From sequence record PP777464.1: a stretch of DNA of 64,000 bases; one strand, written 5' to 3'. A program made the position numbers and the translations under genes. Shown piece after piece: positions 1 through 64,000 of this stretch. Every line of letters begins with the position of its first letter. The first letter of the stretch is position 1. Below the pieces are notes generated by a model. It saw only the letters and a program-made list of their open reading frames with translations, searched no databases and had not been told where the DNA came from.

Positions 1-3000
1 CAATGTACCACCTACTGTTGTGTTACCACCAAAGGAAGCTGCACCATCAGAGTGAATAGTTTCAGATACTGACAAACTCTTAGCTGTAATATCAGAAGTT
101 GTTAGGTCTAAACCACCTGCTGGGGTGAATACACCTTCAACAGTTACGTCATTGTCAAATGTAGCTGCACCAGTTACACCTAATGTTGAACTAAATGTAC
201 CAGTACTACCAGATACAGCACCGGAAACCAATGAACCAACAGTTGTTACACCAGTAATATTCGCAATACCTGTTACACTCAATGGTCCAGAAGTTAATGA
301 ACCAGTTACACCCAAATTACCACCAACGGTTGCGTTGTTAGTAACATCCAAACTACCAGCATTCACTGTACCCGATGCAGTAACATTAGTAGTACTTACA
401 CCACCACTTAGTGTGCTTAGTCCAGTTGCAGTGATTGTTGAAGCAGTTGCAAGACTATTAGCAGAAATATCTGCACCAGTTAGGTCGATACCACCTTGTG
501 GAACCAATTCACCTTCAACTGTTAGTTTTTGAACAGTACTATCACCAGATACATTCAAAGATGCAGCACTTAGTGCAGCTACTGTACTTTGACCAGTTAC
601 ATTTAAGGTAGTGTTTACAGTAGTGTTGTTTAAAGTTGTATCACCGGATACTAATATAGCGTCGGTATTAATACCACCTGCAACTACTTGAATACCACCA
701 GTGCTTACAGTTACTTTCTTACCGATATTTACGATATCAGTTAGGGTAGTTGCACCAGTTACTGCCGCAGTACCTGCAACTGAAAGGTTACCAGATACAG
801 ATGGGCTGCCAGTTACAACACCAGTTGTTAGTACTAGGTTACCACCAACGGTAGTATTACCAGAACTAGCAAGGGTAATTGCTGAAACATTGGAAGAACT
901 TAAATCAATTGAACCATTAACAACTAGGTCACCACCAATTGTAGCACCTTCAGTAGTACTTAGGGATTTGGAACTAATATCGGTAGTACTTAGGTCAATT
1001 GCACCAGGGGTCAATGTCCCAGATACGGTCAGATCACCAGTAATAGCTGCACTTTTCGCAATTGCAATAGTATCATTGGTAGAAGTAATATTATTAACAC
1101 TTAATATACCATTAATGTTTGCATCATTGTCAACACGTAAACCTTCACCAACTGAATTTAATACAATACTTGTAGCTGTTACTTCAGTAGCAGATACTTG
1201 TTTTAGTGTACTTGAACCAGTTGTTTCAATAGTAGCTGCATGGACAGCACCAATAGTTGCATCAGTAGTAATTAGTTTTGGTAGAGTGCTAGAATTCACT
1301 GTATCCGAAACTGTAATAACACCAGCACTTGTAATTGTCTCTGCACTTGCAAGAGATTTCACAGACACATCAGCAGCACTTAGGTCAACAGTACCTGCTA
1401 CCACAAGATCGCCACCAATTGTAGCACCTTCAGTTGTGGTTAGAGACTTAGAACTAATATCAGTAGTACTTAGGTCAATTGCACCAGGGGTCAATGTCCC
1501 AGATACGTCCAAATTACCAGTGATTGTAGTGTTATTGTTAATTGCTACACCATCAGCATTGCTGATTGACGCAGTTTCAACAGATGCACCTTTTAATACA
1601 CCAGTAGCGGTAATGTTAGTTGCAGAAGTAATAGCACCAGAAGCGTTAACACCAGCTAGAGTTGATGTACCAGTTACATTTAGTGTGGTTGCATTTGCAG
1701 TGGTTGCAGTCACTGTGGTAATATTAGCTTCAGTACTGGAAAGTTTAGGTAGAACACTACTTACTGTACCTTCAGAACTAATAACTGCACCAGTACTGGT
1801 TAGAGATTTAACAGCAACGTCAGCAGCACTTAGATCAACTGTACCTGCAACAACTAGGTCACCACCAATGTTAGCACCTTCAGTAGTTGTTAGAGACTTA
1901 GCATCAATATCAGTAGTACTTAGGTCAATTGCACCAGGAGTAACAGTTCCAGTCACAGATAGATTACCTGCAATTGAAGTGTTGTTTGTTATTGACACAC
2001 CAGCAGTGTTGCTAATGATTGCAGTTTCAACAGAAGATGCCTTTAGAGCACCAGTTTCAACGCTACCAGATTTAGAAAGACCAGTTACTACAGATGATGC
2101 ACCAGAAATTTCACCAGTTGCTGTAATAGTAGAGCCAGAAATTGCAGTACCTGCAATTGCACCAGTACTATTGATTGAAGTTGCTGTAACACCAGCAAGA
2201 GTTGATTCACCAGCAACAGATAGAGTTGTTGTAACATCAACTTTGTTTGGTGCAATATCAAGACCGTCAACGTCAGCGATTGCAGTTACACCAGTTGAAG
2301 TTCCAGTTACTACCAAGTCTTTAACAGTGATTGTTTGACCAGTTACGGTTACATCACCACTGAAAGTGCCAGCTACCGCAGATAAATCGCCACTAAAGGT
2401 TGCGTTATCACCGCTAACATCCCCAGTAAAGGTTGCACTTGTACCGGATACGCTACCACTGAAGATACCTTTAGAACCACTAACATCACCACTGAAAGTA
2501 CCAGAGGCAGCAGATAATGCACCAGTAACAGTTGCAGTACCACCAACTTGTAGAGATGAACCTACAGTAGTTTGACCAACTGATTCAAGAGTTTGACCTT
2601 TGATCGCTTCAGCAGCAACTACTGATTTAGGAGTTAGATCTTGTCCACTCACATCAACAGTTAGGCCAGTTACAGTACCTGTAAATTCAACATCATTAAG
2701 AATTGCTTTACCACCAACTTGAAGTTGTGGAGTAGCAGGGTTTTGTGTTGCGTTACCAGTAATTGTTAGATAATCTAATTTGTTTAGACCATTACCAGTA
2801 ATACCATAGGTAGATAGTGCAGCAGAACCGAAGGTTGCAGTTTGTAGAACGTTCAACTTAGCAGGAGACATTAGTTCAGATTGAACTTCGTTTGCTAACA
2901 AGACTGTTGGACGTGCACTAGGTGCAGTATATGCAAAACCTAGCTTAACGTTAGCATCAGCGGTATTTTGACCCAAATTGATTGCTTTGAATGTTGCAGT

Positions 3001-4005
3001 ACTTGCTAGACCAGTGATGTTTGCACCCAATGTAACTGCACCAGTTAGTGCTGAAGCACCGGATACTGATAATGTTGTTGCTTGGATATCATCTAAATCA
3101 AAACTACCACCAATAGTACCAGATACGTTGATGTTGTTAAAGTTTGCAGTACCAGAACTTTCGATATTAGGAATAGTTGCTACACCAGTTACTTCTAAAT
3201 CAACAACTTTAGTTTTACCTTTAGTTACTTCAAGTAAAGGAGTGGTTGGTGATTGAATTGCGTTACCAGAAATAGTTACATAATCTAATTTGTTTAAACC
3301 ATTACCTGTAATACCGTAAGTTGAAAGTGAAGAATCACCAAATGTTGCAGTTTGTAGAACATTCAACTTAGCTGGTGACATTAGTTCGGATTGAACTTCG
3401 TTCTGTAGAAGAACGGTTGGTCGTTGTCCTGGAACGGTGTAACCAAAGTTTAGTCTATATGCTTGACCTGCTTCATTAGGCCCGATACGAATATCACGGA
3501 AGTTTGCAGTACTTGCAAGACCAGTGATATTTGCACCCAATGTGACTGAACCAGTTAGTGCTGAAGCACCAGACACATTAAGTGTTGTAGCATTAATATC
3601 AGAAAGATTAAAAGTACCACCAAGTGTACCAGAAATGTTTACATCTTTAAAAGTTGCTGTGCCAGTTGAAGTAATATCAGTTGATTCAACAGAATCAAAT
3701 GATCCTGAATTAGCTTCTAAGTTATCAAATTTTGCAGTTGTGCCGACAGCAGCAGTAATGTTTCCTGCAAATGTCGCAGCACCTGAAACATCAGCACCAC
3801 CGGATAAGGTTGCCTTACCAGCAACATCCAATGCACCTGTGACATTCACAGAACCAGCGGTAATTGCAGTGAATACTGCGTTAGCAAAAGACACTTCCCC
3901 ATTAACCGTTAGGTCATTACTGAATACTGCATTACCTTTGACCAAAAGATCCTTACCTACCGTGGAATTACCAGATACATCAAGATCCGTTTTAATCGAG
4001 TACAT
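1..4005 (-). CDS. Giant Thr/Gly/Ser/Val-rich beta-fibre structural protein, paralogue A (3' end beyond window; >1335 aa)
   Basis: Absent from the ORF track because it has no stop in the window. ATG at 4005-4003 with SD AGGAGG. Translation starts MYSIKTDLDVSGNSTVGKDLLVKGNAVF, nearly identical to the 4155-9089 protein. The long + strand ORFs here are its shadow. Confidence 0.9.
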   Translation of the reverse strand, partial: MYSIKTDLDVSGNSTVGKDLLVKGNAVFSNDLTVNGEVSFANAVFTAITAGSVNVTGALDVAGKATLSGGADVSGAATFAGNITAAVGTTAKFDNLEANSGSFDSVESTDITSTGTATFKDVNISGTLGGTFNLSDINATTLNVSGASALTGSVTLGANITGLASTANFRDIRIGPNEAGQAYRLNFGYTVPGQRPTVLLQNEVQSELMSPAKLNVLQTATFGDSSLSTYGITGNGLNKLDYVTISGNAIQSPTTPLLEVTKGKTKVVDLEVTGVATIPNIESSGTANFNNINVSGTIGGSFDLDDIQATTLSVSGASALTGAVTLGANITGLASTATFKAINLGQNTADANVKLGFAYTAPSARPTVLLANEVQSELMSPAKLNVLQTATFGSAALSTYGITGNGLNKLDYLTITGNATQNPATPQLQVGGKAILNDVEFTGTVTGLTVDVSGQDLTPKSVVAAEAIKGQTLESVGQTTVGSSLQVGGTATVTGALSAASGTFSGDVSGSKGIFSGSVSGTSATFTGDVSGDNATFSGDLSAVAGTFSGDVTVTGQTITVKDLVVTGTSTGVTAIADVDGLDIAPNKVDVTTTLSVAGESTLAGVTATSINSTGAIAGTAISGSTITATGEISGASSVVTGLSKSGSVETGALKASSVETAIISNTAGVSITNNTSIAGNLSVTGTVTPGAIDLSTTDIDAKSLTTTEGANIGGDLVVAGTVDLSAADVAVKSLTSTGAVISSEGTVSSVLPKLSSTEANITTVTATTANATTLNVTGTSTLAGVNASGAITSATNITATGVLKGASVETASISNADGVAINNNTTITGNLDVSGTLTPGAIDLSTTDISSKSLTTTEGATIGGDLVVAGTVDLSAADVSVKSLASAETITSAGVITVSDTVNSSTLPKLITTDATIGAVHAATIETTGSSTLKQVSATEVTATSIVLNSVGEGLRVDNDANINGILSVNNITSTNDTIAIAKSAAITGDLTVSGTLTPGAIDLSTTDISSKSLSTTEGATIGGDLVVNGSIDLSSSNVSAITLASSGNTTVGGNLVLTTGVVTGSPSVSGNLSVAGTAAVTGATTLTDIVNIGKKVTVSTGGIQVVAGGINTDAILVSGDTTLNNTTVNTTLNVTGQSTVAALSAASLNVSGDSTVQKLTVEGELVPQGGIDLTGADISANSLATASTITATGLSTLSGGVSTTNVTASGTVNAGSLDVTNNATVGGNLGVTGSLTSGPLSVTGIANITGVTTVGSLVSGAVSGSTGTFSSTLGVTGAATFDNDVTVEGVFTPAGGLDLTTSDITAKSLSVSETIHSDGAASFGGNTTVGGTL

Positions 4006-4066
4006 AGAGTCCCCTCCTATAACGATGAACTATATATTCATAACCCATCTTTTGTTAATATACTTA

Positions 4067-4074
4067 TATTTAGT
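4067..4074 (-). promoter_or_regulatory. T4-like late promoter (ACTAAATA) for fibre paralogue A
   Basis: nnTAAATA motif ~60 nt upstream of the ATG. The surrounding ~24 nt nearly match the region upstream of paralogue B (9134-9157). Confidence 0.6.
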
Positions 4075-19161: not shown

Positions 19162-19199
19162 GTTTATTAATTAGAGTGACTACTCATTTAGGAGAATAC

Positions 19200-21488
19200 A
19201 TGAATCTTACCCAATTATTCAAAAAAAGCGACGAACTGGCAACTTCTCTGGGTCATACATTCTTGACTATTGACCATCTAAGTGCTACAGTACTGACAAT
19301 CGATAGCATCAAAGCAGTATTTGAAGATATGAACATCGATGCAGACAACCTACACGGTCGTTTGATTGCATATCTGAAGAATACAACATTCCCACATGCA
19401 CCTAAAAGTGCTGATGGTGATGAAGCGAACCGCACATCACTTCTCGTGAACCGTGTAGTTCAGGAACTTTCTAAGAAATCAGTAATTGAGCAACTTAAAC
19501 GTGATGATTTCTCAATTGATGCTTATTTTGTACTGTTTGAGTGTTTGTCCTTCCCAAATACTGCACTAGAAGCAGCATTGCGTGAAGAGGGTATCACTTG
19601 TACTGAAGCAGCACGAACTCTACAGAAGCACGTAGAAGCAATCGACAACGGAATCAACCTTCAAAGCATTAGTGATGAGCCAACTGGGGAGAAAAAAGTG
19701 GCACAACAGCAACCATCGTCCAAACAAAAAGGTTTAGAAGATTACACCACTAACCTAACCGCACTTGCAAAAGAAGGTAAACTTGACCCAATGATTGGTC
19801 GCCAGAAAGAGCTTTCTGCACTGATTGAAACTCTGGCCCGTAAGACTAAGAAGAATGCCATCCTGACTGGTGAAGCTGGTGTTGGTAAAACTCAAATCAT
19901 TGATGGTCTAGCACAGGCAATCGCTGATGGTGAAGTACCAGAGCATCTTAAAGATGTTGAAATTCTGTCTCTGAACGTAGGTGCACTGACTGCTGGTACT
20001 AAGTACCGTGGTGAGTTCGAAGAACGTATCGATAACCTACTAAAAGAACTGAAGAAACGTGAAAACACTATTGTGTTCATCGATGAAATCCATATTATGG
20101 TTGGTGCTGGGTCAGCAAGCAACGGTTCTATGGATATGAGCAACATGCTCAAACCTGCACTATCTCGTGGTGAGATTCGTGTAATCGGTGCAACAACTTA
20201 CGATGAATATCGTAAAAACATCGAAAAAGATAGTGCACTAACTCGCCGTTTCATGAAAATTGATGTAGTTGAGCCAACAATTGATGAAACCCGTGCGATT
20301 GTGAATGGTTTGAAATCTACTTATGAAACTTTCCATAACGTAGAGTTCAGTACTGAAGCAATGGATGCAGTTATTACACTAAGTGATAAGTTCCTGAAGA
20401 ACAAGCACTTCCCCGACAAAGCAATCGACCTAATGGATGCGGCGGCAGCGAAAGTACGTTCTCGTGAAACTGATGATAACATCATCACTGTTGCACTGAT
20501 TCAAGAAGTTGTTGCAGGTATCGCAAACCTAGATATTAACGTGGTTGCTTGCACTGAAAGTGAACGTATGCGTAATCTACCAGATGCACTACGTTCTCGT
20601 GTATACGGTCAAGAAGAAGCAGTACAGAAACTGGTTGATAACGTGATGGTAGCTCGTGCTGGTCTGCGTGATAAATCAAGTGTTCAAGGTGCATTCATGT
20701 TTGTTGGGCCATCTGGTACTGGTAAAACTGAAATTACCAAAGCACTGGCTGATGCAACTGGCTCTGAACTGATTCGTTTCGATATGTCCGAGTTTTCACA
20801 GGAACATACTGTTGCTAAACTGATTGGTTCACCTCCAGGCTATGTTGGTCACGATTCCGGTAACGGTCTGCTACTCGACAAGATTGAGCAGTTCCCGAAT
20901 GCAGTACTGTTGCTTGATGAAATCGAAAAAGCTGATCGTAAAGTACTACTAACCTTCCTACAGGTTCTGGACGAAGGACGTTTGACTGGTTCACAAGGTA
21001 AAACTGTTTACTTCAATAACGTAACTGTTATTATGACAACTAACCTTGGTGCAGCAGATTCAACCAAGCGTAGTATTGGGATGAGCGGTAGTGATACAGC
21101 ACAAGATAAAGCGATTAAAGCATTCTTGCCACCTGAATTCATCAACCGTATCGATAGTATTGTGACATTCAAAGACCTAAGCAGCGAAGCGATTGACAGC
21201 ATCATTGATAAGTTCATGGGAAGTTTGAATGAACAAATCAAAGACCGCAAAGTTAAAGTTTCACTAACCAAAGCGGCACGTGAGTGGTTGGCAACAAATG
21301 GTGTTAAAGTTGGGATGGGTGCACGTCCAATGAAACGCACTATTGAGCAAAACATCCGTGTCCCACTAGCTAAAGAGATGTTGTGTGGTTCTCTGGTTAA
21401 TGGTGGTAACGTAACGTTTGATGTGATTGATGGTAAATTGGCTATCAAACCTAAACGAACTAAAGCAGTAGAAAAAGTTATTGCGTAA
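19200..21488 (+). CDS. clpA: ClpA-type Hsp100 AAA+ unfoldase
   Basis: Two Walker A motifs (GEAGVGKT, GPSGTGKT), Walker B IVFIDEIH, RFDMSEF..KLIGSPPGYVG. No ClpB M-domain. IGF/L-like loop KRSIGM. Start ATG 19200 with SD AGGAGA. Confidence 0.9.
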   Translation: MNLTQLFKKSDELATSLGHTFLTIDHLSATVLTIDSIKAVFEDMNIDADNLHGRLIAYLKNTTFPHAPKSADGDEANRTSLLVNRVVQELSKKSVIEQLKRDDFSIDAYFVLFECLSFPNTALEAALREEGITCTEAARTLQKHVEAIDNGINLQSISDEPTGEKKVAQQQPSSKQKGLEDYTTNLTALAKEGKLDPMIGRQKELSALIETLARKTKKNAILTGEAGVGKTQIIDGLAQAIADGEVPEHLKDVEILSLNVGALTAGTKYRGEFEERIDNLLKELKKRENTIVFIDEIHIMVGAGSASNGSMDMSNMLKPALSRGEIRVIGATTYDEYRKNIEKDSALTRRFMKIDVVEPTIDETRAIVNGLKSTYETFHNVEFSTEAMDAVITLSDKFLKNKHFPDKAIDLMDAAAAKVRSRETDDNIITVALIQEVVAGIANLDINVVACTESERMRNLPDALRSRVYGQEEAVQKLVDNVMVARAGLRDKSSVQGAFMFVGPSGTGKTEITKALADATGSELIRFDMSEFSQEHTVAKLIGSPPGYVGHDSGNGLLLDKIEQFPNAVLLLDEIEKADRKVLLTFLQVLDEGRLTGSQGKTVYFNNVTVIMTTNLGAADSTKRSIGMSGSDTAQDKAIKAFLPPEFINRIDSIVTFKDLSSEAIDSIIDKFMGSLNEQIKDRKVKVSLTKAAREWLATNGVKVGMGARPMKRTIEQNIRVPLAKEMLCGSLVNGGNVTFDVIDGKLAIKPKRTKAVEKVIA

Positions 21489-21521: not shown

Positions 21522-24500
21522 TTATTTAACTTCTAATAGATTTTTAATGTCATTACCACTTATTTGCAAACTATCGGAGTAAACAGATAGTTCGATTGGA
21601 TAACTGTTAACACTATAACGTTTTAGTAAATTAACTTTACCTAAGTTCAAGCCATTAAATGAATATGTCACATTCTCTTTAAAGTCGTGTTCTGCACTAT
21701 ACATTACCCCACGGAGTAAGTTATTTGCAAATCGTACTTCAACTTTTTCAAAACCAAGAGAAATAATATCATTCATACTTGCACCAGCACCAGATAGAAC
21801 ATTATTAGTAACACTATATGGACTAACTGAATCTGGTTGTGAAACATAAGTAGCATTTTCTTCACTGATAGCAGTAATGTTAGTTACTGTTCCACCAATT
21901 ACACCAATATATGTATCACTAACTAGTGGATATGCATATTCCCATACCCCTTCAGTATTCAGTACTGGTTGAATAATACCAACATCATACTCGAACACGT
22001 TAATTTCCACACTATCAGTCATTTTGGTTCTCACTAACTCACTAAGAACACCTGCACCAGTAATTGGTAAGTTATATCCGTTATCAATGGTAACACCATC
22101 AACTTCAAATATCTCGTTAGACACTACCCAAACATCAACGTCATCTGGTGTAATTCCATCATTATAAGAACCACCGTATAGTGTTGTGTCGTAGAATACT
22201 TCATAGTTCATTGCGTCGATAGCATAGTTTCTATTTGTTTCATACAACTTAACACCATCAACCAAGAATTCTGGATCAGCAAAGGTTCTAATACGAACGA
22301 TGTTCAATGCTAGAGGTATTGCTGGTTCATTCTGTTGTTGTTTAGTGATGTTATCATAACGAAGTACAACTCCAGTACTATCTAGTAGTTCTACAGTTCC
22401 GTTCGCAGTGTTTCTTACTGTGTACAAGGTTGGTGTGGTGTCAGTTTTGATTTTTGATACACTCAAGATGGTTTCCCATGCATTGTTTTGGTATCTCACA
22501 TAATCTTCACCATCAGTTGTGAATATCATAACCTTATCACCATCAGATAGGGTATTGTCAATTACTTCAGCTTCTGTATCACTAACAATTGATTTAATTT
22601 TATAGAAGTATTTTTCATCATACTTACTGTATGATTTACTAATATCATTTTCAATCTTAGCGTAAGAAGGAATACTAACAATTGCTTCTGTTGTTTTATA
22701 AGGGTTGATAATAACCATACCTTCAGTTTTATATCTACTATTGTCTCTCAATTGAACTAGTGAAACACTATTGAATCCATAACCATCAACTGTGAAGCGA
22801 ATCTGACCAATCTTTCTTCCTGATGGGTTAATATCAGAAATGTCGATTATGTACGGATCTACTTCGTCACCTTCAACTTCCCATTTTAACTCGGAAGTTT
22901 GTGATTCAAGTGCTAGATTATCAAATGCATTCATATCATCGTAGTACTTAGCATCGGTGATGCTATCTAGGATGTGCTGATAATCACTGTACATTGGGTT
23001 ATTTCTATCAAGAGGTAAGTCATCAAGATTTATTTCTGCCAATTGAACTAGTTGACCGTCAGTTATGAATTTGTCTTCCATGAAATCATCAATGCTTTGG
23101 TCATCTGGGATACTCTCGTATACACCATTAACATTAACATAAACATATTTTCGTGGCATCATAGTAAATGCATGAATATCAATAGGCATTCTACTTAGTA
23201 TTTCTTCAGCCTTTTCATAATGGTCGGTAGCATCTTTGTCATACAAACCACGCATACCAGACAATACATGAATTGCGTCATTGTAGAATCGTTGATTTCC
23301 ATCTTCATCTACATGGCGATATGAATAAACACCATATTCAACTTCAAGTATAATTCTAACTTCATCATCAGTTGCAGTAGTATTGTTTTCTTTAATTAAA
23401 GAAACATACTTTTTATACAACTCACTACTAACTTCAAAGTAACCAAAGTTATAATCAGTACTGGATGCATAACCAAACGGTAGTCTGGTACTTGGATTAT
23501 CATCATAGGTTAACCCACTAAATCCACATCCAACTTCATCATGAATTACTTCATCATCTGCACCTGTGTACAATTTCAAACGGTTAGAGAGTGTGTTATA
23601 CTGAACATAATGATTTACGTCATTAAACATTTCATTTTGTGTTGATTCTTTATATACACGATTCAACGTTTCTGTGAATTCTGCGGTTGCTACCAAATCA
23701 TCTGCATGGTCTGCATACCATTGGTTAACACCGTAAGCAATCCCTAGAGTTACGTTCAATTCTGGGTAATACAATTGCATCTGATAAGCAACCAATAGGT
23801 CGAAATCTTCATCACTGTATTCTGGGAATGTATATTTGTAACGTTGTAATTCAAAATTACTAACAACATCTTGTGCATTAGATTGATATTTCTTATTCAC
23901 TTCTTCCAATACATCAACACTTGCCAAATTATCATTTGGTTTACATTGAGTGTTGTCGTAGTGCATGATAACATCAATTTCTTGGAAACGGCGATTAGGT
24001 GTTACGAAATCACTTGGCAATTCACCAACTTGCTCCCAACGTTGAGTTACCTCATTGAATTGAGCATATTCATAATCCCAAATGTCTTTTTCCGTTTTAA
24101 CCCAAGTCCCATCTGCAAATATATAGCCATTAGGATCTAAATCATTACACAAACCTTTAATTAAATCATCATCTGAAGTTTTCTGTTCAATCTGGGAACG
24201 AATCTTAGTTCTATATGGTTTAACTTCTTCAAAGTACTCAACGATTTGATTAATCAAGTTGTCGTTGGAATAGTTCTGTACTAATGATTGTTCTAAACCT
24301 ACAATATAAATGTAAGATGTTTTGAATACCCAATCAACAACGCTTTGTTCTACGTGAACATACTTAACCATATCAAACACAATTTCACTCTGATGTAAGT
24401 CGAATGAGTTCTTCAATAAAGCTAGTGCTTTACGAACGTTAATCTCACGATTACTCAACGAACCATTAGCATCACGAACTGTATAGTCAGCGTATAACAT

Positions 24501-31493: not shown

Positions 31494-31529
31494 TTTTGGA
31501 CTCCATATAATTCGTTCATTCATTTGATT

Positions 31530-35035: not shown

Positions 35036-35093
35036 AATTTATTCCTTTAAATCAGTAAAGTACTAGTTCAGTACTGGGAATTATATATAGAAA

Positions 35094-36037: not shown

Positions 36038-36074
36038 AAAGATTTCCTCATTATTATTTATAGTACTGAAATAT

Positions 36075-48753: not shown

Positions 48754-50952
48754 ATGGCTGTCAATACAAGTGATTACCTACTACAGCAGTTGGTTAATCA
48801 AACTAAAGATAACAATGATAGTTTGACTGCTATCCGTGAGTTATTAGCTGAAAATATAAAGAATGATAAGAAAAAATCAGGTTCAAATAGTAAAAAGAAT
48901 GGTTCCAGTTCCAGTTCTTCCAGTAATCGTGGAAATCGTGGAAGTGCACAAGCCGATGATGGGAAAGCATTTGGTAAATTGTTCAAATCACTATCTTCTG
49001 AAGTTTCCAATGTAAGCAAAACAATGATGAACTCCAGTACGAACGTAAGTACTGTAGTAAACTCATTAGGCGTTAGTGCATCATCATTTGCTGGTTCATT
49101 AGCAATGATGCCAGGTCCAATTGGTGCAGCGGCAGCAGCATTTAAACTCGTTACTGGTGCTGGTCTTGCTGTATATAACGCACTTAATGCACAATTGGAA
49201 GTATATACCAGAATTAACAGTGCTGGTGTTGCATTGGCTGAAGGTTATGGTTCAGTACTGAAAGGTGCAGGTGCATCTATGTTGAGTATGGATGCATTCA
49301 GTGAAGCACTACAAACACATAGCTCAGTAGTAGCTCAATTGGATGGTGCATATGGTGATGGTGTTGCTACCTTTGGTAAATTGTTAGGAACTGTTCAACA
49401 AGCTCAAAATGAACTTGGCCTTTATGGTATTTCTCAAAAAACATTAACTGATTTAACTGCAAGAAACATTAAGTTCCAAAAACAATATGGTGGTCGTGAA
49501 GCTCTTCGTAGTATGGACCAAGCTAAAAGTACTGAACAATTTATCATGAGCATGACTAAATTCAGTAAAAGCATGGGTGAATCCGTTGATGCATTACTAA
49601 ACAAAACACAAAACCTAGATAAATCACTCGATACTCGTTCTATGCAAATTGCATTGCAGAACTACTCTGGACTATCCAGTAAAGCTGCTGTAGCAACATC
49701 TAAGGCGTTCAACGAAGCTGCGGGTGCAATGGGTGATGCAGGTGCAGATTTCCTCCGTTTGATATCACACAGATTGTCTATTGGTGGCGTACCGGATGAC
49801 CTACTCACTCCAGTACTGAACCAGTTCGCTGATTTAGGTGAAAATCTTGTACGTAGTGGTGTAACTGATTCACAAGAAATTCGTCGCCAACAATTAGAAT
49901 TCGTTAAAAAGAATAAAGAATTAATTAAGCAAGATTTGCTTAACCAGATTCAATTAGGAAACACAACTGCTGCAACCTTCTACCAACAACTATTGGATAT
50001 GGAAGCAACCGTAAATGAACCTAAAAATAATCCCGCTGATAAATTAACTCAATTTACTAACCGCTTCAATATGTGGATTAGTAAAGAATTCACTGAACCA
50101 TTTAATACAATGTATGCTAATACACAAAATTCAATTGTGGATTATCTTTCTGACATTGCAGACAGAACTGATGGTGCATGGGAGTTTATTGGGGAATTGG
50201 CTCTTGATGGATTTGGGTTAGTACCTATTGCTAAAGATGCAATTGCTTACCTTGATCGTATTGGTGCTGAATTTACAGCTTGGTTGGATGGATTGGGTGC
50301 AGATATATTCGGTTCAGGTTACTCTAAAGTGTCAGAAGCATTTGATACCTTTATGAATAACTTAATGGATTTACCTGGTAACCTATGGAATTCTGTTAAA
50401 AGTTGGTTCGGTGGTGGTTCTGATAATGATATAAAACTCAATAACAGTACTGAAACCCCAGCAGAAAGCGTAAACAACATCATTGACAACGGTGTAAATA
50501 GTGTTAGTGATTATTTTGCAGGGATGTGGGATAAGTTCAACAAATGGAACACCTCACGTAACTACAAAGAACCAAAACCACTACCATCTGATTATGCTGA
50601 CAGTTTATTCAACCGTCCAGGAGTAGAACGTATTCGTCCTGTTATTGAAAAAACCAATAACGTTGCTCCAGAGATAACTGTATCTCGTAAAGATTTTGAT
50701 AAAACTGCATGGGCACCAGGTGAACCACCAGTACCGCCAAAACCTGACGATACAGAGGCAATTAAGAAGATGATAAATAATGGTAGTGCAGTGACATCGA
50801 GAACTGGACCACCAGCACCGATTTCTGATGAAATGAAAGAAATACTCAAAAAGCTTGCCGATGTTAATGAACAATCACTATCTGCTGTACAACAGACAAA
50901 TAATTATCTAAGAACTATCTCTGAAAACACCCAAGGTGAGAGAAACAGTTAA
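48754..50952 (+). CDS. Tape-measure / hub protein (gp29-like)
   Basis: Ala/Gly/Ser-rich helical ~730-aa protein immediately before the portal gene. Start moved to ATG 48754 (SD AAGGG). Confidence 0.6.
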   Translation: MAVNTSDYLLQQLVNQTKDNNDSLTAIRELLAENIKNDKKKSGSNSKKNGSSSSSSSNRGNRGSAQADDGKAFGKLFKSLSSEVSNVSKTMMNSSTNVSTVVNSLGVSASSFAGSLAMMPGPIGAAAAAFKLVTGAGLAVYNALNAQLEVYTRINSAGVALAEGYGSVLKGAGASMLSMDAFSEALQTHSSVVAQLDGAYGDGVATFGKLLGTVQQAQNELGLYGISQKTLTDLTARNIKFQKQYGGREALRSMDQAKSTEQFIMSMTKFSKSMGESVDALLNKTQNLDKSLDTRSMQIALQNYSGLSSKAAVATSKAFNEAAGAMGDAGADFLRLISHRLSIGGVPDDLLTPVLNQFADLGENLVRSGVTDSQEIRRQQLEFVKKNKELIKQDLLNQIQLGNTTAATFYQQLLDMEATVNEPKNNPADKLTQFTNRFNMWISKEFTEPFNTMYANTQNSIVDYLSDIADRTDGAWEFIGELALDGFGLVPIAKDAIAYLDRIGAEFTAWLDGLGADIFGSGYSKVSEAFDTFMNNLMDLPGNLWNSVKSWFGGGSDNDIKLNNSTETPAESVNNIIDNGVNSVSDYFAGMWDKFNKWNTSRNYKEPKPLPSDYADSLFNRPGVERIRPVIEKTNNVAPEITVSRKDFDKTAWAPGEPPVPPKPDDTEAIKKMINNGSAVTSRTGPPAPISDEMKEILKKLADVNEQSLSAVQQTNNYLRTISENTQGERNS

Positions 50953-50964: not shown

Positions 50965-52701
50965 ATGAGTTGGAAACGACATATGACAATGGGGAGATCG
51001 AAGTTATCGGTCGTCCCTAATCAGTCCAGTAATAGCAACAAATCAACAGGAACGAAAACAAATTTCGCTTCCTATCTTCCAGTAGTATACAATGGTTTAG
51101 CTAACCGTACTGAACGTTATAGTCAGTATGAACAGATGGACCAAGATCCTGAAATTAGAACAGCACTTAATATCATTGCTGACTTCTGTACACAAAGTAC
51201 TGAAGATTTTGGTCTTCCATATAAAATCAAATATAAAGATGATATTGGTGATACAGAAGTAACTACTATTGAAGACCGTTTGGATGCATGGACTGAACAA
51301 AATGATTTTAAAACCAGAATGTATGAAATTGTACGTGGCCTATTAAAATACGGTGACCAATTCTTCATTCGTGACCCAGAAACATTTGACTGGTACTGGG
51401 TAAGCCCAAAAAACGTTGAACAAGTATTCGTCAACGAAGCAACCGGAAAAACCCCTGTAATTTATTATATCCGTGATGTATCTTTGAATCTTAAAGATAA
51501 AGTGTTTAGTAACTTGCAAGTTGGTTTTGACAAAACTGCATATCCTGGTGCAATCCCTACCACATTAGGTGGCGGTGGTTCAGTAGCAGCAGGTGGTGCA
51601 TCTGGCTTTACTAACCAAGGAAACTCTGCTGACCCATTCAGTACTAACGGTCGTCTTGATGTTATTCCAGTTGGTGCAGAACATGTAATTCATCTAACCC
51701 TAAATACAGGACAAGATGGAGTTTGGCCTTTTGGTACTAGTATACTTGAAGATGTTTTCAAAGNNNNNNNNNNNNNNNNNNNNNNNNNNNNNNNNNNNNN
51801 NNNNNNNNNNNNNNNNNNNNNNNNNNNNNNNNNNNNNNNNNNNNNNNNNNNNNNNNNNNNNNNNNNNNNNNNNNNNNNNNNNNNNNNNNNNNNNNNNNNN
51901 NNNNNNNNNNNNNNNNNNCGTATTCCTTCAAATAAAGGTGGCAGTACTTCTCTAATGGATGCAGCATATAATCCATTAAGTATTCTAGAAGATTACTTCT
52001 TCCCACAAACTTCTGAAGGTCGTGGTTCAGATGTACAAACACTTCCAGGTGGTGATAACTTAGGTCAGATTGATGACTTGCGTTACTTCAACAATAAATT
52101 GATTCGTGGATTGCAAATTCCAGCTTCATATCTACCGCAAGGTCCAGATGATGGTGGTGTATCACTATTCGGTGATGGTGCAACACAAGCAATGGCAAGT
52201 GAATTACGTTTTAATAACCAATGTATGCGTTATCAACGTTTAGTTGCAAAACTATTTGATGCAGAATTTAAACGTTTTATGGTTAAAAATGGATATAACA
52301 TTAGTACTTCATCTTTTGAAGTAATTATGAATCCACCTATTAACTTGGCTTCTTATCGTAAAGCGGAACTAGATGCTAAACTAATTAACACCTATCTCCC
52401 ACTTAACGATCTGCCATATATGGCAAAACAAACTATTCTTGAAAAAATGGGCTTCTCTAAAGCTGATATTGTTAAGAATGAGCAAATGTGGCTCCAAGAA
52501 AATCCACAAGATGGTTCCGCTCCGTCAAGTGGTGAAGAAGATGCTGCTGGGTTGCAATCTGTTGGTATAGATGCTCCTAACGATCCTGGTATGGATTTGG
52601 GTATTGATGGTGACGGTAACTTAGAAAGTGCCGATGCTGAATACCAAGAACAACAAGGAAGTGCAGGTTTTAACCCGAATAATTTAGGCGATTCTTTTTA
52701 A
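50965..52701 (+). CDS. gp20: Portal vertex protein (T4 gp20-like); contains an assembly gap
   Basis: RYSQYEQMDQDPEI, LEDYFFPQTSEGRGSDVQTLPGGDNLGQIDDLRYFNNKL.RGL.IP. Confidence 0.93.
   Translation: MSWKRHMTMGRSKLSVVPNQSSNSNKSTGTKTNFASYLPVVYNGLANRTERYSQYEQMDQDPEIRTALNIIADFCTQSTEDFGLPYKIKYKDDIGDTEVTTIEDRLDAWTEQNDFKTRMYEIVRGLLKYGDQFFIRDPETFDWYWVSPKNVEQVFVNEATGKTPVIYYIRDVSLNLKDKVFSNLQVGFDKTAYPGAIPTTLGGGGSVAAGGASGFTNQGNSADPFSTNGRLDVIPVGAEHVIHLTLNTGQDGVWPFGTSILEDVFKXXXXXXXXXXXXXXXXXXXXXXXXXXXXXXXXXXXXXXXXXXXXXXXXXXXXRIPSNKGGSTSLMDAAYNPLSILEDYFFPQTSEGRGSDVQTLPGGDNLGQIDDLRYFNNKLIRGLQIPASYLPQGPDDGGVSLFGDGATQAMASELRFNNQCMRYQRLVAKLFDAEFKRFMVKNGYNISTSSFEVIMNPPINLASYRKAELDAKLINTYLPLNDLPYMAKQTILEKMGFSKADIVKNEQMWLQENPQDGSAPSSGEEDAAGLQSVGIDAPNDPGMDLGIDGDGNLESADAEYQEQQGSAGFNPNNLGDSF
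51764..51918. other. Assembly gap (155 N) inside the portal gene
   Basis: Run of n characters; the reading frame is preserved across it. Confidence 0.98.
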
Positions 52702-53005: not shown

Positions 53006-53105
53006 ACAAAAATCGCACTTTTTAAAGCTTTTAAAAATGGCGAAATTTTTCAGTACTAAATAATATCATACTTTATATGAATGTAATATATCTATGGAGG
53101 ATATA

Positions 53106-53939
53106 ATGGCGAATTTAAAACTACTACAAGAAGCAATTGAAGCGTTTGCAAACGGCGAACAAGATGTTGCTGATAAAAAAATGCGTAAGTACTTTGTTGA
53201 GCAAGCTCAAGAAATCAATAAAGAACTAGAAGAAAGCATGGACGAAGAAGAATGTGAAGTTGAAGTCAAAGACGAAGAAAAACTTGACGAAGACTTTGAT
53301 GTTCAACCAGACGCTGGTCTAAATGCTGAAATCGAATACACCCTAGGTGAAGAAGATGAAAGTGCAGAAGAAGAAGTTGAATTCTCTGCTGATGCTGATG
53401 GCGAAGAAGTTGACGCTGAAGCAGAAGTTGGTGCAGAAGTTCCTTCCGAAGACCAATGGGAATCTATTCAAGATGCTTTCCGTGGCCTACAACAAATGTT
53501 TGACGAAATCGGTGGTGATGAAGTTGACCTAGGTTCTGACGACGAAGAAGTTGAAGTTGGTGCGGAAGAAGAATTCGGTGCTGATGGTGAAGAATCTGAA
53601 GACGAATTTGCTGATGTACAATTCGGTGATGAGAAAGTTGGTGAGTCTTTCAAACTTAAGCAAGTTGCTGCGGTTGATAAGAAAGAAAAAGCTGGCGTTA
53701 ATACCAAGTCCCCAGTTGCACCAGAAGCTAAATCTCCAGTTCAAGGTGTTGCTCCAGTGAAATTCGCTAAAGCTTCCGAAAAACAAGTAGATTATGATTT
53801 TGAAAACGAAGATGCTATGTCCCACACTGATGAAGACCTAGGTAAAAATGCTCGTGGCGAAATGAAAGATGTTGCGAAGCCAAAAAATACCGCTTCTAAA
53901 TCTCGTTCTCCACTACCAAAATCACAACCAAAAATCTAA
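53106..53939 (+). CDS. Highly acidic prohead core protein
   Basis: Glu/Asp-rich. SD GGAGG gives start 53106. Late promoter ACTAAATA at 53055-53062. Confidence 0.7.
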   Translation: MANLKLLQEAIEAFANGEQDVADKKMRKYFVEQAQEINKELEESMDEEECEVEVKDEEKLDEDFDVQPDAGLNAEIEYTLGEEDESAEEEVEFSADADGEEVDAEAEVGAEVPSEDQWESIQDAFRGLQQMFDEIGGDEVDLGSDDEEVEVGAEEEFGADGEESEDEFADVQFGDEKVGESFKLKQVAAVDKKEKAGVNTKSPVAPEAKSPVQGVAPVKFAKASEKQVDYDFENEDAMSHTDEDLGKNARGEMKDVAKPKNTASKSRSPLPKSQPKI

Positions 53940-54591: not shown

Positions 54592-54657
54592 CATTTTAAA
54601 AATATAAATATTTGTATGTTGAAGTACAGATATTTCAGTACTTAAAGGAGAGAACGA

Positions 54658-55773
54658 ATGTCTAAATTAGAAAAGCTTCTAAAAGAATCATCTCTTTCTG
54701 ATGAGGCAAAACAGCTAATTCAGGAAGCATGGAATGAAGAAAAAAACACACTTGCCGCAGAAATGCGTGAAGAAATGAAAGGCCGCTACAAACAAGATTT
54801 GTCCGAGCTAACCGAAGGTCTAAATACTATGGTTACTCAAGTTATCGCTGAAGAAATGGGTGCAGTATATGAAGAGAAAAAACGTCTTGTAGAAGATCGT
54901 GTAACTCTCCGTAAAACCCTAAGTAATTTCTCTGCGTTTTCTAACTCTGTTTTGGCTGAAGAAGTTAAACAAATGCGTAAAGAACGTAAGCATCTTCAAG
55001 AATGCATGGGTAAATTCGTTAATTTCTCTAACGGTATCCTAGCAGAAGAGCTAAAAGAATTCCACATCGAGAAACGTCAACTAGTTGAAACTCGCGTTAA
55101 ACTACTAGCTGAAGGCTCCCGTCAAATTGCTGAAGCACGTAACAACTTCATCAAACGTACCTCTGAAAGTGCTGCTAAATACATTGCAGAAACTACTCAG
55201 AAAAACCTATACGCTTTGAAAGAAGATCTTGTTGAAGCAAAACAAAATATGTTTGGTCGTAAAATCTTTGAAGCGTTTGCTCAAGAGTTTAATGTCAAAC
55301 AATTTAATGAGAATTCACTACTACGTTCCCTAACTGAATCAATTAAGTCTAAAGAAGACGAAATTGCACAAGTTAAACAAGAACTAAATGAAACTGTAAG
55401 TGAAGTTAAAGCTGCTAAAACCAAACTACGTATTATGGAAGATTCACAAGCTCGTAATGCGATTATGTCTGAACTAGTTAAGCCACTAACTACACAACAG
55501 AAACAAATTATGGAATCCCTTCTAGCTACTTCTCCTACAGAAAAGCTTAAAGACGATTTCAGCAAGTACCATAAGTCAGTACTTAACGGTACTAAAGTAA
55601 ATGAATCTGCTACCACTCGTCAAGCAGTTCAGTCTTCCGCTAAGAGAACTCTTGCAGAAGGTAAAGTAATCACTGGCAACCGTCAGGCTATTGTTGAAAG
55701 CGAAGAAATGACCGCTGACGATATGGCATTCCTAAAAGAACTCGATGTTCTTTCTGGTATCAATAAAAAATAA
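54658..55773 (+). CDS. gp22: Prohead core scaffold protein (gp22-like)
   Basis: Coiled-coil protein between protease and MCP, with FGRKIFEAFA.E. Late promoter TATAAATA at 54603. Confidence 0.8.
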   Translation: MSKLEKLLKESSLSDEAKQLIQEAWNEEKNTLAAEMREEMKGRYKQDLSELTEGLNTMVTQVIAEEMGAVYEEKKRLVEDRVTLRKTLSNFSAFSNSVLAEEVKQMRKERKHLQECMGKFVNFSNGILAEELKEFHIEKRQLVETRVKLLAEGSRQIAEARNNFIKRTSESAAKYIAETTQKNLYALKEDLVEAKQNMFGRKIFEAFAQEFNVKQFNENSLLRSLTESIKSKEDEIAQVKQELNETVSEVKAAKTKLRIMEDSQARNAIMSELVKPLTTQQKQIMESLLATSPTEKLKDDFSKYHKSVLNGTKVNESATTRQAVQSSAKRTLAEGKVITGNRQAIVESEEMTADDMAFLKELDVLSGINKK

Positions 55774-59518: not shown

Positions 59519-59519
59519 T

Positions 59520-60038: not shown

Positions 60039-60048
60039 AAGTTTTTTT

Positions 60049-60138: not shown

Positions 60139-60444
60139 ATGGCAAAAGCTAAAAAAGAAGTTAAAGTTGAAATTCGTGACCTAAATGATGAACAACGTAA
60201 ACGTCTAGGTGATGCACTAAACAACGCAGTAGTACAACTTACTTTTATTGACGACACCAAAGCATCCTATGCAGATTTCATTAGTTCCATCTCTGATGAA
60301 CTAGGTATTGATGCATCCGATATCAAACAAGCCGCTCAACGTATCTACAAAGGCGATTACTTTGATAAACAAAACAAACTCGATAATATCGAAACTATCC
60401 TAAGTGTTACTAACAATTTGCCACAAGCAGATGACGATTACTAA
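60139..60444 (+). CDS. dsbA: Double-stranded DNA-binding protein (T4 DsbA-like)
   Basis: 101 aa, DELGID...A..IYK.D, similar to recalled T4 DsbA (DELGVDGK..NRLL.LYHKD). Confidence 0.7.
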   Translation: MAKAKKEVKVEIRDLNDEQRKRLGDALNNAVVQLTFIDDTKASYADFISSISDELGIDASDIKQAAQRIYKGDYFDKQNKLDNIETILSVTNNLPQADDDY

Positions 60445-60468
60445 TAAGTACTAAAAACTAAACTTTAT

Positions 60469-60497: not shown

Positions 60498-60526
60498 AAC
60501 TTAATAAACGTAAAGGAATACAAACG

Positions 60527-63532: not shown

Positions 63533-63542
63533 GGAAAATATT

Positions 63543-63683
63543 ATGATTATTGCAGACGAAACTAAACTAAAATATGACGAAGTAAATGACGTATTCTCTG
63601 ATGAATCACTGGCACTGTCTGAGGACAGTGTTAACGAGGCGTGGGAACAGTACGTTTTATGGAGTGCATCCCAAGGAGAGTAA
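63543..63683 (+). CDS. Small acidic hypothetical protein (46 aa)
   Basis: SD AAGGA, fills the gap after the polymerase; start moved to 63543. Confidence 0.55.
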   Translation: MIIADETKLKYDEVNDVFSDESLALSEDSVNEAWEQYVLWSASQGE

Positions 63684-63684
63684 T

Positions 63685-63987
63685 ATGGAAAATATCTATA
63701 AGCGTGTTGGTGCAGTACTGGAAGATAGTACTATCGTAAATTCAGTACTTGCATACAATAATGATGATGAAGTTGTTCTAATGTCTGCTGGTTTCACCAG
63801 AACTGGTTCTGTTGAAATTGACGGTGAGATTGTTGACGTCTATTCTATTGAAAAGAAACGCAAAGTTGTCATTGTTGAAGATGTTAACACGTTAAAAGAC
63901 TTAGAACATCTACGTTACAAATTCAACATTGGTGCAGGTGCAAACGCTGATAAGCCGTACCTTAAACGTTGGAACACAAAATACTGA
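63685..63987 (+). CDS. Hypothetical protein (100 aa)
   Basis: SD AAGGAG gives start 63685. Confidence 0.65.
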   Translation: MENIYKRVGAVLEDSTIVNSVLAYNNDDEVVLMSAGFTRTGSVEIDGEIVDVYSIEKKRKVVIVEDVNTLKDLEHLRYKFNIGAGANADKPYLKRWNTKY

Positions 63988-64000
63988 TAAAAAATTGAGA

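Follow-up and report, generated by a model that had tools for sequence, protein, structure and literature searches.

We found that the six-letter palindrome AGTACT occurs about eight times too often throughout a giant phage of E. coli and its enterobacterial relatives. The word behaves as a selected, genome-wide cis signal, under a pressure that reaches codon choice and even amino-acid choice. Our best reading is that it serves as a landing site that marks phage DNA, although what reads it has not been identified. We found no published description of this excess.

The window analysed here is the whole stretch of 64,000 nucleotides from record PP777464.1, and it is 100% identical to Escherichia jumbo phage fEgEco12, which has 1115 AGTACT sites in 375 kb. 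An earlier note had drawn attention to the motif from the sequence alone, and its observation is confirmed. The window carries 138 sites, about 1 per 460 bp, where the note had estimated about 130. The GC content is 37.1% rather than about 34%, and 21.5 sites are expected from composition, giving an observed/expected ratio (O/E) of 6.4. The extended forms TTCAGTACT and AGTACTGAA occur 18 and 15 times, on 30 distinct sites (roughly 28 according to the note). C is found at -1 in 48% and G at +1 in 44% of the sites, with no information further out. The frames are 85 AGT-ACT, 32 xxA-GTA-CTx and 15 xAG-TAC-Txx, with 6 non-coding sites in 2251 nt. The frame assignments in the note are all correct: 20349, 46175 and 61829 are AGT-ACT, 20903 and 49254 are xxA-GTA-CTx, 15119 and 57196 are xAG-TAC-Txx, and the six sites assigned to intergenic DNA lie outside ORFs. 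The three positions given for the 12-mer TTCAGTACTGAA are also exact; genome-wide, this 12-mer has 22 copies against 0.04 expected. The individual features of the window are as follows (none is assigned to a strand unless stated).

1-64000: the 138 scattered AGTACT sites described above.
20346-20357: full 12-bp palindrome TTCAGTACTGAA, inside the ATPase/protease-like gene 19176-21488.
26127-26138: full 12-bp palindrome TTCAGTACTGAA, inside the 3333-aa ORF 21522-31523 (minus strand).
49251-49262: full 12-bp palindrome TTCAGTACTGAA, inside the virion protein gene 48754-50952.
35059-35075: two non-coding AGTACT sites (35059 and 35070) 11 bp apart, between genes 31574-35035 and 35138-35533.
36062-36067: non-coding AGTACT site between genes 35549-36037 and 36075-38738.
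53052-53057: non-coding AGTACT site (TTTTCAGTACT) upstream of gene 53094-53939.
54637-54642: non-coding AGTACT site just before the ribosome-binding site of gene 54658-55773.
60447-60452: non-coding AGTACT site directly after the stop codon of the DsbA-like gene.
51764-51918: run of N (gap or mask) inside the T4-like portal gene 50965-52701, not part of the motif but bearing on the count.
60139-60444, plus strand: small transcription-regulator-like protein, the DsbA candidate of the note and a possible but unprivileged reader of the motif.

Regarding the gap, Pfam PF07230 positions 2-183 match before it and positions 238-433 after it, and only the continuing reading frame is open downstream. 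The two sides are therefore continuous and in frame, and 155 nt fits the 54 missing profile positions. The masked letters themselves were not read, but the gap could hide at most a site or so.

The excess in the window is well beyond chance. The O/E is 6.0, 3.6 and 2.4 under Markov models of orders 1 to 3. AGTACT ranks first of its 180 anagrams, with 276 occurrences against a median of 42 in both-strand counts, and ACTAGT, the palindrome built from the same two codons swapped, has 22 sites. A synonymous-codon shuffle of the window's genes gives 37.4±5.1 sites (maximum 50 of 300) against 132 observed, and a third-base shuffle that keeps dinucleotides gives 72.2±5.7 (maximum 88). The note had set out in advance what would count against it, namely loss of the enrichment under codon-pair-preserving shuffles or a fourth-order Markov model, or equally frequent anagrams. 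The anagram and shuffle comparisons clearly did not go against the motif. Under the order-4 model the O/E is only 1.19, which formally satisfies the stated condition. However, this is not a refutation, because that model predicts the hexamer from AGTAC, GTACT and GTAC, which are themselves inflated by the motif: 66% of all AGTAC are followed by T. Hence, it is an invalid null for a word that makes up most of its own sub-words.

The same picture was obtained for the whole phage. The unique 353.7 kb contain 977 sites against 120 expected, with an O/E of 8.1 (composition), 8.8 (order 1), 4.6 (order 2) and 2.5 (order 3). AGTACT is the top hexamer under the order-0, order-1 and order-2 models; order 3 was not ranked. 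We counted 848 coding sites against 231±12 when every protein and each gene's codon usage are kept (z=53, every frame 3.2-4.5x), and against 533±13 when dinucleotides are also kept (z=24). The ACTAGT control is not enriched. Moreover, 52% of all Ser-Thr dipeptides are written AGT-ACT against 15% expected, and in the window GTA-CTG occurs 17 times against 1.9 expected. Non-coding DNA holds 128 sites against 8.6 expected. Thus, the excess works at the nucleotide level and is not explained by amino-acid need or codon usage. The contrast with the usual depletion of palindromes is even sharper than the note supposed, as 25 of the 64 hexamer palindromes are completely absent from this genome.

The excess is shared by all nine enterobacterial Rak2-like phages tested, which span four genera. 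In addition to fEgEco12, 121Q, RaK2, fENko-Kae01, EJP2, CBB, BF and XbC2 carry 903-1312 sites per genome against 134-187 for the reversed word, whereas GAP32 was checked with the 8-mer only (130 against 2). AGTACT is the top hexamer in each of the five genomes analysed in full. In contrast, no excess was found in the relative Vibrio phage 2.275.O (81) or in T4 (28), muut (2), Atu_ph07 (25), PA5oct (15) and XacN1 (0). E. coli K-12 has 400 sites in 4.64 Mb where about 1100 are expected, a 2.8-fold depletion, and the word is 35 times denser in the phage than in the E. coli chromosome.

Several lines of evidence point to selection. Between fEgEco12 and 121Q, 58% of sites are conserved, against 36% for all hexamers in the same frames. 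Synonymous positions inside the motif change about half as often as elsewhere, with third-base conservation inside against outside the motif of 0.87 vs 0.68 for ACT, 0.81 vs 0.64 for GTA and 0.85 vs 0.59 for TAC. Ser-Thr O/E is 1.46-1.74 and Val-Leu O/E 1.29-1.56 in the five phages, against 1.07 and 0.97 in the Vibrio relative, and the reversed dipeptides stay near 1. One-off neighbours of the motif are generally not depleted (order-1 O/E 1.1-2.3), and the one low neighbour (AGGACT/AGTCCT, O/E 0.42) is normal under the order-3 model. The flanks are two-fold symmetric: the counts at -1/+1 are C 430/G 462, A 249/T 220, T 207/A 220 and G 91/C 75, although 80% of coding DNA lies on one strand.

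The sites are spread like a Poisson process at about 2.5 per kb over the whole genome, and per-gene counts fit this model (chi2/df 1.01). In the 21-kb terminal repeat, which carries the early genes, the density rises to 4.9 sites per kb in coding and 10.2 per kb in non-coding DNA. There, the sites occupy two fixed places in the sigma-70-type early promoters, one overlapping the upstream edge of the -35 element and the other abutting the -10 element. AGTACT starts at -27 and at -7/-8 from the -10 hexamer in fEgEco12, RaK2, CBB and BF, and spacing peaks at 20-22 bp. These fixed positions could partly reflect duplicated promoter cassettes, plus the few positions where a promoter tolerates the word.

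The interpretation given in the note, a genome-wide cis signal for a phage protein, is partly supported. The nucleotide-level excess and its behaviour as a selected signal hold, but which of the functions listed there applies (self mark, methylation, nicking, organising protein or recombination) is not settled by our data. Two candidates lose weight. Methylation by the phage C5 methyltransferase is weakened, and this enzyme is excluded as a general cause, because it resembles DNMT3, a CpG enzyme, because RaK2 DNA was reported to be CpG-methylated, and because the gene is missing from Serratia phage BF, which has the full excess. The DsbA-like protein (phrog_639 at E 1.6e-7, no Pfam match) is conserved in all relatives, including the Vibrio phage that lacks the excess, so it is not a privileged candidate.

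We favor, tentatively and with a probability of roughly 0.42, that AGTACT is a highly iterated palindrome of the Rak2-like jumbo phages of Enterobacterales, kept hyper-abundant by selection acting on double-stranded DNA. What the analysis shows directly is the frame-independent excess and its survival in the shuffles, its presence in four genera, the constraint on synonymous positions, the rise in Ser-Thr and Val-Leu dipeptides, the symmetric flanks, the Poisson scatter with its increase in the terminal repeat, the fixed promoter positions, and the contrast with the host. The reader, by comparison, is inferred: a two-fold symmetric, phage-encoded DNA-binding protein or enzyme, possibly virion-borne or early. 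No protein that binds AGTACT was identified. Of the 57 genes conserved in the five motif-rich phages and absent from the Vibrio relative, 30 small ones were scanned against Pfam and none showed a recognisable DNA-binding domain; no HU-like gene was found either. A uniform Poisson scatter and only 58% positional conservation fit a requirement for density, but they do not prove protein binding. Flank preference also differs between lineages, being C/G in Asteriusvirus and RaK2 and A/T in CBB and BF, and a single conserved reader would have to tolerate that.

Among the alternatives, the one that survives best, although we consider it unlikely, is that AGTACT is the target of a phage DNA methyltransferase and that its abundance is tied to this modification, as proposed for cyanobacterial HIP1 and its cognate methylases. 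The candidate is the small Dam-family adenine methyltransferase (PF05869, fEgEco12 g162), which is present in all five motif-rich genomes analysed and absent from the Vibrio relative. AGTACT is a classical type II site (ScaI) with an A and a C that could be methylated, and symmetric flanks fit an enzyme acting on a palindrome. However, 57 other genes show the same presence/absence pattern, so the co-distribution is weak evidence. The specificity of this enzyme was not assayed, nor was base modification of the site, since only assembled contigs of public runs hold this phage, with no raw reads. Many members of the family in coliphages are annotated as Dam-like adenine methylases, whose target is taken to be GATC. 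Moreover, a modification explains protection, not why sites should be multiplied eightfold, and the deamination-type neighbours AGTATT/AATACT are not depleted (O/E 1.15-1.30). Of the other methylases, N6_N4 enzymes occur only in CBB and BF, and no D12-class Dam was found.

It is less likely that AGTACT is a working site for a phage DNA-transaction enzyme, such as a nickase, recombination initiator, primase, type II topoisomerase or clamp loader. In this view, frequent palindromic sites would serve replication, recombination or late transcription in both directions, and the extra density in the direct terminal repeat, where it is highest, would promote end-to-end recombination into concatemers. 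A palindrome acts in either orientation, a spacing of about 350-400 bp is compatible with frequent entry points, and the window itself encodes SbcCD-like nuclease subunits and endonuclease VII. On the other hand, there is no evidence of nicks or ends, again because raw reads were lacking, and known hotspots such as Chi are asymmetric and far rarer. The true Chi octamer is separately enriched and oriented in the terminal repeat, so that role seems already filled. Nor are the fixed promoter positions explained.

A still more doubtful possibility is that the sites bind, titrate or exclude a host protein of Enterobacterales, for example a nucleoid or division factor. The excess is confined to phages of Enterobacterales and close kin, and the early promoters carrying the sites must work before any phage gene is expressed. 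AGTACT is the core of the E. coli SlmA binding site GTGAGTACTCAC, which is likewise a palindromic site read by a dimer. However, the required GTG/CAC flanks are absent: the SlmA 12-mer never occurs, GAGTACTC occurs only 6 times, and the SlmA flank (G at -1, C at +1) is the least used, at 5-10% in all five genomes. In addition, XbC2, isolated on Xanthomonas, keeps the excess, and we know of no other host factor with this site.

Equally improbable is a neutral by-product of biased mutation or repair, such as very-short-patch-like correction towards AGTACT, or of avoidance of other words, with no function of its own. The purge of many other palindromes from the same genomes shows strong word-level forces, and biased repair would also mimic conservation at synonymous sites. 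Against this, one-off neighbours are generally not depleted, the pressure changes amino-acid dipeptides, the density differs by genome region and sites sit at fixed promoter positions. No Vsr-type gene is annotated in the parts of the fEgEco12 record examined, although no dedicated family search was run, and avoidance of GC-rich palindromes cannot create an AT-rich one eightfold. Finally, a signal acting in RNA (AGUACU), or mere codon or codon-pair usage, might be suggested by the fact that a palindrome appears in the transcript whichever strand is transcribed and that 49% of coding sites are the codon pair AGT-ACT, but it is contradicted by the enrichment in all three frames and non-coding DNA, by flanks symmetric about the dyad, by the depletion of the same two codons in the opposite order (42 against 82 expected) and by sites in untranscribed promoter DNA.

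The closest parallel is HIP1 (GCGATCGC), the highly iterated palindrome of cyanobacteria (Xu, Lawrence and Durand 2018, PMC5861425). It is also a short, many-fold over-represented palindrome found inside and between genes and in all frames, conserved beyond background, which argues for selection rather than biased repair, with no function as a peptide or RNA motif and an unknown reader. AGTACT differs in residing in a virus rather than a cellular genome, in being 6 bp and AT-rich with an O/E of 8-12 rather than 15-300, in lacking a demonstrated cognate methylase, in its Poisson-uniform distribution apart from the terminal repeat (large-scale periodicity was not examined), in its fixed positions in early promoters and in coexisting with a near-total purge of other palindromes. 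Chi (GCTGGTGG) of E. coli, with DNA uptake sequences as a related class of self-identifying words, is likewise a frequent short word that lets a protein machine tell one's own DNA from foreign DNA. However, Chi and uptake sequences are asymmetric and orientation-biased, and no nuclease or uptake system that reads AGTACT is known. Restriction-site avoidance is extreme in these same genomes, where 16-28 of the 64 hexamer palindromes, and GCGC, are absent. AGTACT goes the opposite way, while the unrelated phages XacN1 and muut do avoid it.

The architecture that we propose resembles that of TF1 of Bacillus phage SPO1, an abundant phage-encoded protein that coats phage DNA genome-wide and has preferred sites overlapping early promoters in the terminal redundancy, where it represses early transcription. 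TF1 recognises hydroxymethyluracil DNA rather than a defined hexamer and belongs to the HU family, of which these phages have no gene; the parallel with TF1 was not tested here. In this sense, the inferred reader would mark or organise phage DNA across the genome as distinct from host DNA. At the paired promoter sites, two helical turns apart, it would act as an operator that shuts down or tunes early transcription.

We found 138 AGTACT sites in the window, where composition (37.1% GC) predicts 21.5. Hence, the excess described in the earlier note is confirmed. The extended forms also occur as that note had claimed, with 18 copies of TTCAGTACT, 15 copies of AGTACTGAA and three copies of the 12-mer TTCAGTACTGAA, and every reading frame or non-coding status that it had assigned to individual sites proved correct. 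In our gene calls, 85 sites read AGT-ACT, 32 read xxA-GTA-CTx and 15 read xAG-TAC-Txx, whereas six lie in the 2251 non-coding bases. The flanks carry information only at ±1 (C in 48% of sites, G in 44%) and faintly at ±2-3. These are therefore independent short sites and not copies of a longer repeat, and a dispersed repeat family was ruled out on this basis, apart from promoter cassettes in the terminal repeat. The relevant features of the window are as follows.

20346, copy of the 12-mer TTCAGTACTGAA
26127, copy of the 12-mer TTCAGTACTGAA
49251, copy of the 12-mer TTCAGTACTGAA
51764-51918, run of N inside the T4-like portal gene
21522-31523 (minus strand), a single 3333-aa ORF, conserved in all relatives including the Vibrio phage (38% identity), whose function was not examined

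Regarding the run of N, Pfam PF07230 matches at positions 2-183 before it and at positions 238-433 after it. Downstream, only the frame that continues the upstream one is open. The two sides are therefore continuous and in frame, and 155 nt fits the 54 missing profile positions. The masked letters were not looked up: the fEgEco12 genome was retrieved only outside the window, and the homologous 1.8 kb of phage 121Q (330801-332600) was left out. The whole-record count of the 8-mer CAGTACTG did run over that stretch, although no positions were read there. In the window, the ratio of observed to expected sites (O/E) is 6.4, 6.0, 3.6 and 2.4 under Markov orders 0 to 3.

The earlier note had stated in advance that the signal should be discarded if the excess vanished upon codon-pair-preserving shuffling or under a fourth-order Markov model, or if anagrams of the word were equally frequent. 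AGTACT ranks first among its 180 anagrams, with 276 occurrences against a median of 42 in both-strand counts, and ACTAGT, a palindrome built from the same two codons, has 22 sites. Shuffling synonymous codons within each gene of the window gives 37.4±5.1 sites against 132 observed. A much more conservative shuffle, which moves only third bases between codons that share their first two bases and the following base, gives 72.2±5.7. The order-4 ratio, in contrast, is only 1.19. However, this value is uninformative and cannot serve as a refutation, because that model predicts the hexamer from AGTAC, GTACT and GTAC. Of all AGTAC in the genome, 66% are followed by T, and 55% of all GTAC are preceded by A, so that the sub-words are largely the motif itself. 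Of the 161 Ser-Thr dipeptides in the window, 85 are written AGT-ACT against 28 expected from codon usage. GTA-CTG occurs 17 times against 1.9 expected, although CTG is a rare Leu codon here, and ACT-AGT is below expectation. Altogether, an artefact of composition or codon usage is rejected by Markov orders 0-3, the anagram ranking and two kinds of shuffle.

The window is 100% identical to Escherichia phage fEgEco12 (PP777464.1, 374,733 bp), a Rak2/121Q-like jumbo myovirus with 20,993-bp direct terminal repeats. Over the whole genome there are 1115 sites, of which 977 lie in the unique 353.7 kb against 120 expected. O/E is 8.1-8.8 (order 0-1), 4.6 (order 2) and 2.5 (order 3), and AGTACT is the top hexamer under the order-0, order-1 and order-2 models (order 3 was not ranked). 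The 8-mer CAGTACTG occurs 221 times (O/E 58). When proteins and per-gene codon usage are held fixed, 848 coding sites compare with 231±12 (z=53), and all three frames, with 415, 156 and 277 sites, are 3.2-4.5-fold up. When dinucleotides are also fixed, the comparison is 533±13 (z=24). Non-coding DNA has 128 sites against 8.6 expected.

The excess is shared by nine of nine enterobacterial Rak2-like phages and is not found in any of six outgroup phages. One of the nine, GAP32, was checked with the 8-mer CAGTACTG only, which gave 130 copies against 2 for its reversed word.

Whole-record counts of AGTACT and of the reversed word TCATGA, in that order.
121Q: 903, 134
RaK2: 937, 142
fENko-Kae01: 941, 150
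EJP2: 1312, 159
CBB: 1235, 187
Serratia phage BF: 1072, 152
XbC2: 1105, 186
Vibrio phage 2.275.O (distant relative): 81, 98
T4: 28, 51
muut: 2, 19
Atu_ph07: 25, 82
PA5oct: 15, 40
XacN1: 0, 127

In each of the five genomes that we analysed in full, AGTACT is the top hexamer, with order-1 O/E of 8.8-11.9. The six-base core is constant, while the ±1 preference drifts: it is C/G in Asteriusvirus and RaK2, and A/T in CBB and BF. G at -1 and C at +1 are always disfavoured. On the other hand, the word is under-represented in the host. E. coli K-12 has only 400 sites in 4.64 Mb, where about 1100 are expected and the reversed word reaches 1147. The word is therefore about 35 times denser in the phage than in its host. 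It is also absent or nearly absent from unrelated phages, with 0 sites in the 385 kb of XacN1 and 2 in the 146 kb of muut.

Several lines of evidence indicate that the sites are under selection. Between fEgEco12 and 121Q (82% identity over the aligned window), 61 of 105 sites are conserved, that is, 58%, against 36% for all hexamers in the same frames. Genome-wide, the synonymous third base is conserved more often inside the motif than outside, with 0.87 against 0.68 for ACT, 0.81 against 0.64 for GTA, and 0.85 against 0.59 for TAC. The pressure reaches the proteins. Ser-Thr dipeptides have O/E of 1.46-1.74 and Val-Leu of 1.29-1.56 in the five phages, while the Vibrio relative shows 1.07 and 0.97, and Thr-Ser and Leu-Val stay near 1 everywhere. 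Single-mismatch neighbours of the motif are generally not depleted, which argues against a repair bias of the very-short-patch kind. The one low neighbour, AGGACT/AGTCCT (O/E 0.42), is normal under the order-3 model.

The flank preferences are mirror-symmetric, with counts of C 430/G 462, A 249/T 220, T 207/A 220 and G 91/C 75. About 80% of coding DNA lies on one strand, so this points to recognition of duplex DNA rather than RNA. Outside the terminal repeat, per-gene counts fit a Poisson process at 2.46 per kb (chi2/df 1.01); long-range periodicity along the chromosome was not analysed beyond this fit and the short spacings. In the terminal repeat, the density is 4.9 per kb in coding and 10.2 per kb in non-coding DNA. 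There, the sites sit in the sigma-70-type early promoters at two fixed places. One is AAAAAGTACTTGCAA, overlapping the upstream edge of the -35 element, and the other is AGTACTGTATAAT or AGTACTGGCATAAT, abutting the -10 element. Many promoters carry both, 20-22 bp apart. The same offsets, with AGTACT starting at -27 and -7/-8 from the -10 hexamer, recur in RaK2, CBB and BF, so that the arrangement expected for the operator of a dimeric repressor, a dyad-symmetric site at fixed positions overlapping the -35 and -10 elements, is present in four genera. Sigma-70-like promoters elsewhere in the genome lack the word. Four further features lie in the segments of fEgEco12 outside the window, here denoted L001 and L002.

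L001:1-20993, the terminal repeat, with ten top-strand copies of the E. coli Chi octamer GCTGGTGG in the direction of the early genes
L001:15303-15557, an 84-aa early gene in the terminal repeat, conserved in all five genera-level relatives, with a ParE-like toxin domain (PF24732, E 6e-11), which may be a host-takeover factor
L001:20994-40000, a block of tiny ORFs with the lowest GC (32%) and the lowest AGTACT density (1.4 per kb, still above expectation), which may be younger or faster-evolving DNA
L002:35954-37584, a cluster of Sir2-like, NUDIX and cREC_REC (PF20274, E 2e-23) genes, the last two conserved across the clade and absent from the Vibrio relative, which looks like nucleotide-signal or anti-defence machinery

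We next asked which protein may read the word. Of 57 genes conserved in the five motif-rich phages and absent from the Vibrio relative, 30 small ones were scanned against Pfam. The only matches above the Pfam thresholds were a ParE-like and a cREC_REC domain, and no DNA-binding domain was found. Moreover, these phages have no HU-like gene, which leaves no TF1-like candidate. The DsbA-like protein encoded in the window, which the earlier note had put forward as a candidate, also occurs in the Vibrio relative and hence is not clade-specific. Thus, a cognate DNA-binding protein for the promoter sites was not identified; structures and complexes were not predicted, because no candidate justified it. 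The interpretation offered in the earlier note, a genome-wide cis signal for a phage protein, is partly supported: the word behaves as a selected, genome-wide cis signal, whereas the protein that reads it was not identified.

What the data demonstrate is a selected, duplex-level, two-fold symmetric signal that is needed at a certain density everywhere and at a higher density at the genome ends, and that is built into the early promoters. A symmetric, phage-encoded reader is our inference from these properties. Our best guess, to which we assign a probability of about 0.42, is a DNA-binding protein that marks or organises phage DNA and acts as an operator at the paired promoter sites.

Among the alternatives, methylation by a Dam-like enzyme survives best, although we consider it unlikely. 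A small Dam-family enzyme (PF05869) is present in all five motif-rich phages and absent from the Vibrio relative. However, 57 other genes share that distribution and the specificity of the enzyme is unknown, so that this co-distribution does not tell us whether AGTACT has a cognate methyltransferase, as proposed for the cyanobacterial palindrome HIP1. The closest homologues of this enzyme outside the clade are only 45% identical and were not pursued. The annotated C5 methyltransferase (g455) is rejected as the cause. It resembles the DNMT3 catalytic domain, RaK2 DNA was reported CpG-methylated, the gene is absent from BF, and a 50%-identical homologue sits in phage muut, which has almost no AGTACT. 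The published digests of fEgEco12 did not include ScaI, the enzyme that cuts this word, and modified bases and nicks were not examined, since public runs contain the phage only as assembled contigs. In those digests, ClaI and NruI, which are blocked by CpG methylation, reportedly cut as predicted, in contrast to the methylation reported for RaK2, and SmaI is listed among the enzymes giving the predicted patterns, yet CCCGGG has no site in our count. We have no explanation for these discrepancies. As for other methylase families, N6_N4 methylases (PF01555) occur only in CBB and BF, and no D12-class Dam (PF02086) was found.

A site for a replication, recombination or nicking enzyme is less likely still. 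AGTACT does not behave as a Chi-like hotspot, which would be an asymmetric word with an orientation bias relative to replication or DNA ends, because it is a palindrome with symmetric flanks. The true Chi octamer is separately enriched and oriented in this phage, occurring 24 times on the top strand and 12 on the bottom, against about 1 expected each, and 121Q, RaK2, CBB and BF show a similar excess. A host factor is improbable. In this sense, the site of the host protein SlmA requires GTG and CAC flanks around the AGTACT core, but GTGAGTACTCAC occurs 0 times, and G at -1 and C at +1 are used in only 5-10% of sites. A neutral repair bias is about as improbable, given the behaviour of the single-mismatch neighbours, and RNA or codon effects are very unlikely.

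The nearest known phenomenon is HIP1 of cyanobacteria, with which AGTACT shares the over-representation, the presence within and between genes, the conservation and the unknown function. The present case differs in that it is viral, AT-rich, tied to promoters and embedded in genomes that have otherwise lost 16-28 of the 64 hexamer palindromes and every GCGC. In fEgEco12, 25 of the 64 have zero copies in 354 kb. These are nearly all those with four or more G/C, including GGTACC, CGTACG, CTGCAG, CCATGG and GGATCC. GCGC, CTCCTC/GAGGAG and GAGACC/GGTCTC are also absent, whereas AT-rich palindromes such as GAATTC, AAGCTT and GATATC are not avoided. The relatives 121Q, RaK2, CBB and BF lack 16-28 palindromes and all lack GCGC, while the Vibrio relative lacks none. 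We found no mention of the motif in the papers on fEgEco12, CBB, RaK2, Sharanji or fENko-Kae01 or in wider literature searches, although earlier notice cannot be excluded because the literature searched was incomplete. The pressure on AGTACT is strong: it overrides codon choice, changes dipeptide content and holds across four genera, and it runs against the otherwise extreme purge of palindromes in these phages.

A more far-reaching reading, which we regard as doubtful but which is compatible with the evidence, is that AGTACT is a sequence-encoded identity mark. It would then be the first highly iterated palindrome described in a virus, and it would let a jumbo phage whose DNA is cut normally by common restriction enzymes do by sequence what T4 does by base modification. 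A clade-specific dimeric protein would read a word that is much denser in phage DNA than in host DNA, and would use that difference to separate the two, for protection from the phage's own host-DNA destruction, for recruitment of replication, transcription or packaging functions, or for compaction. It would double as the operator that switches off the early promoters in the terminal repeat.

Hyper-abundant palindromes are known from cyanobacteria and are still unexplained after decades. Finding one in a cultivable E. coli phage, with a 375-kb genome, a laboratory host and a short life cycle, puts the question in a system where it can be tested quickly. From a practical point of view, a ScaI digest would cut these genomes into more than 1000 pieces, recoding or synthesis projects on them should not treat these sites as neutral, and the word would supply a compact sequence tag for recognising this clade in metagenomes. 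If the site is a self mark or a genome-wide operator, it would reveal how jumbo phages without a nucleus or heavy base modification keep their DNA apart from that of the host.
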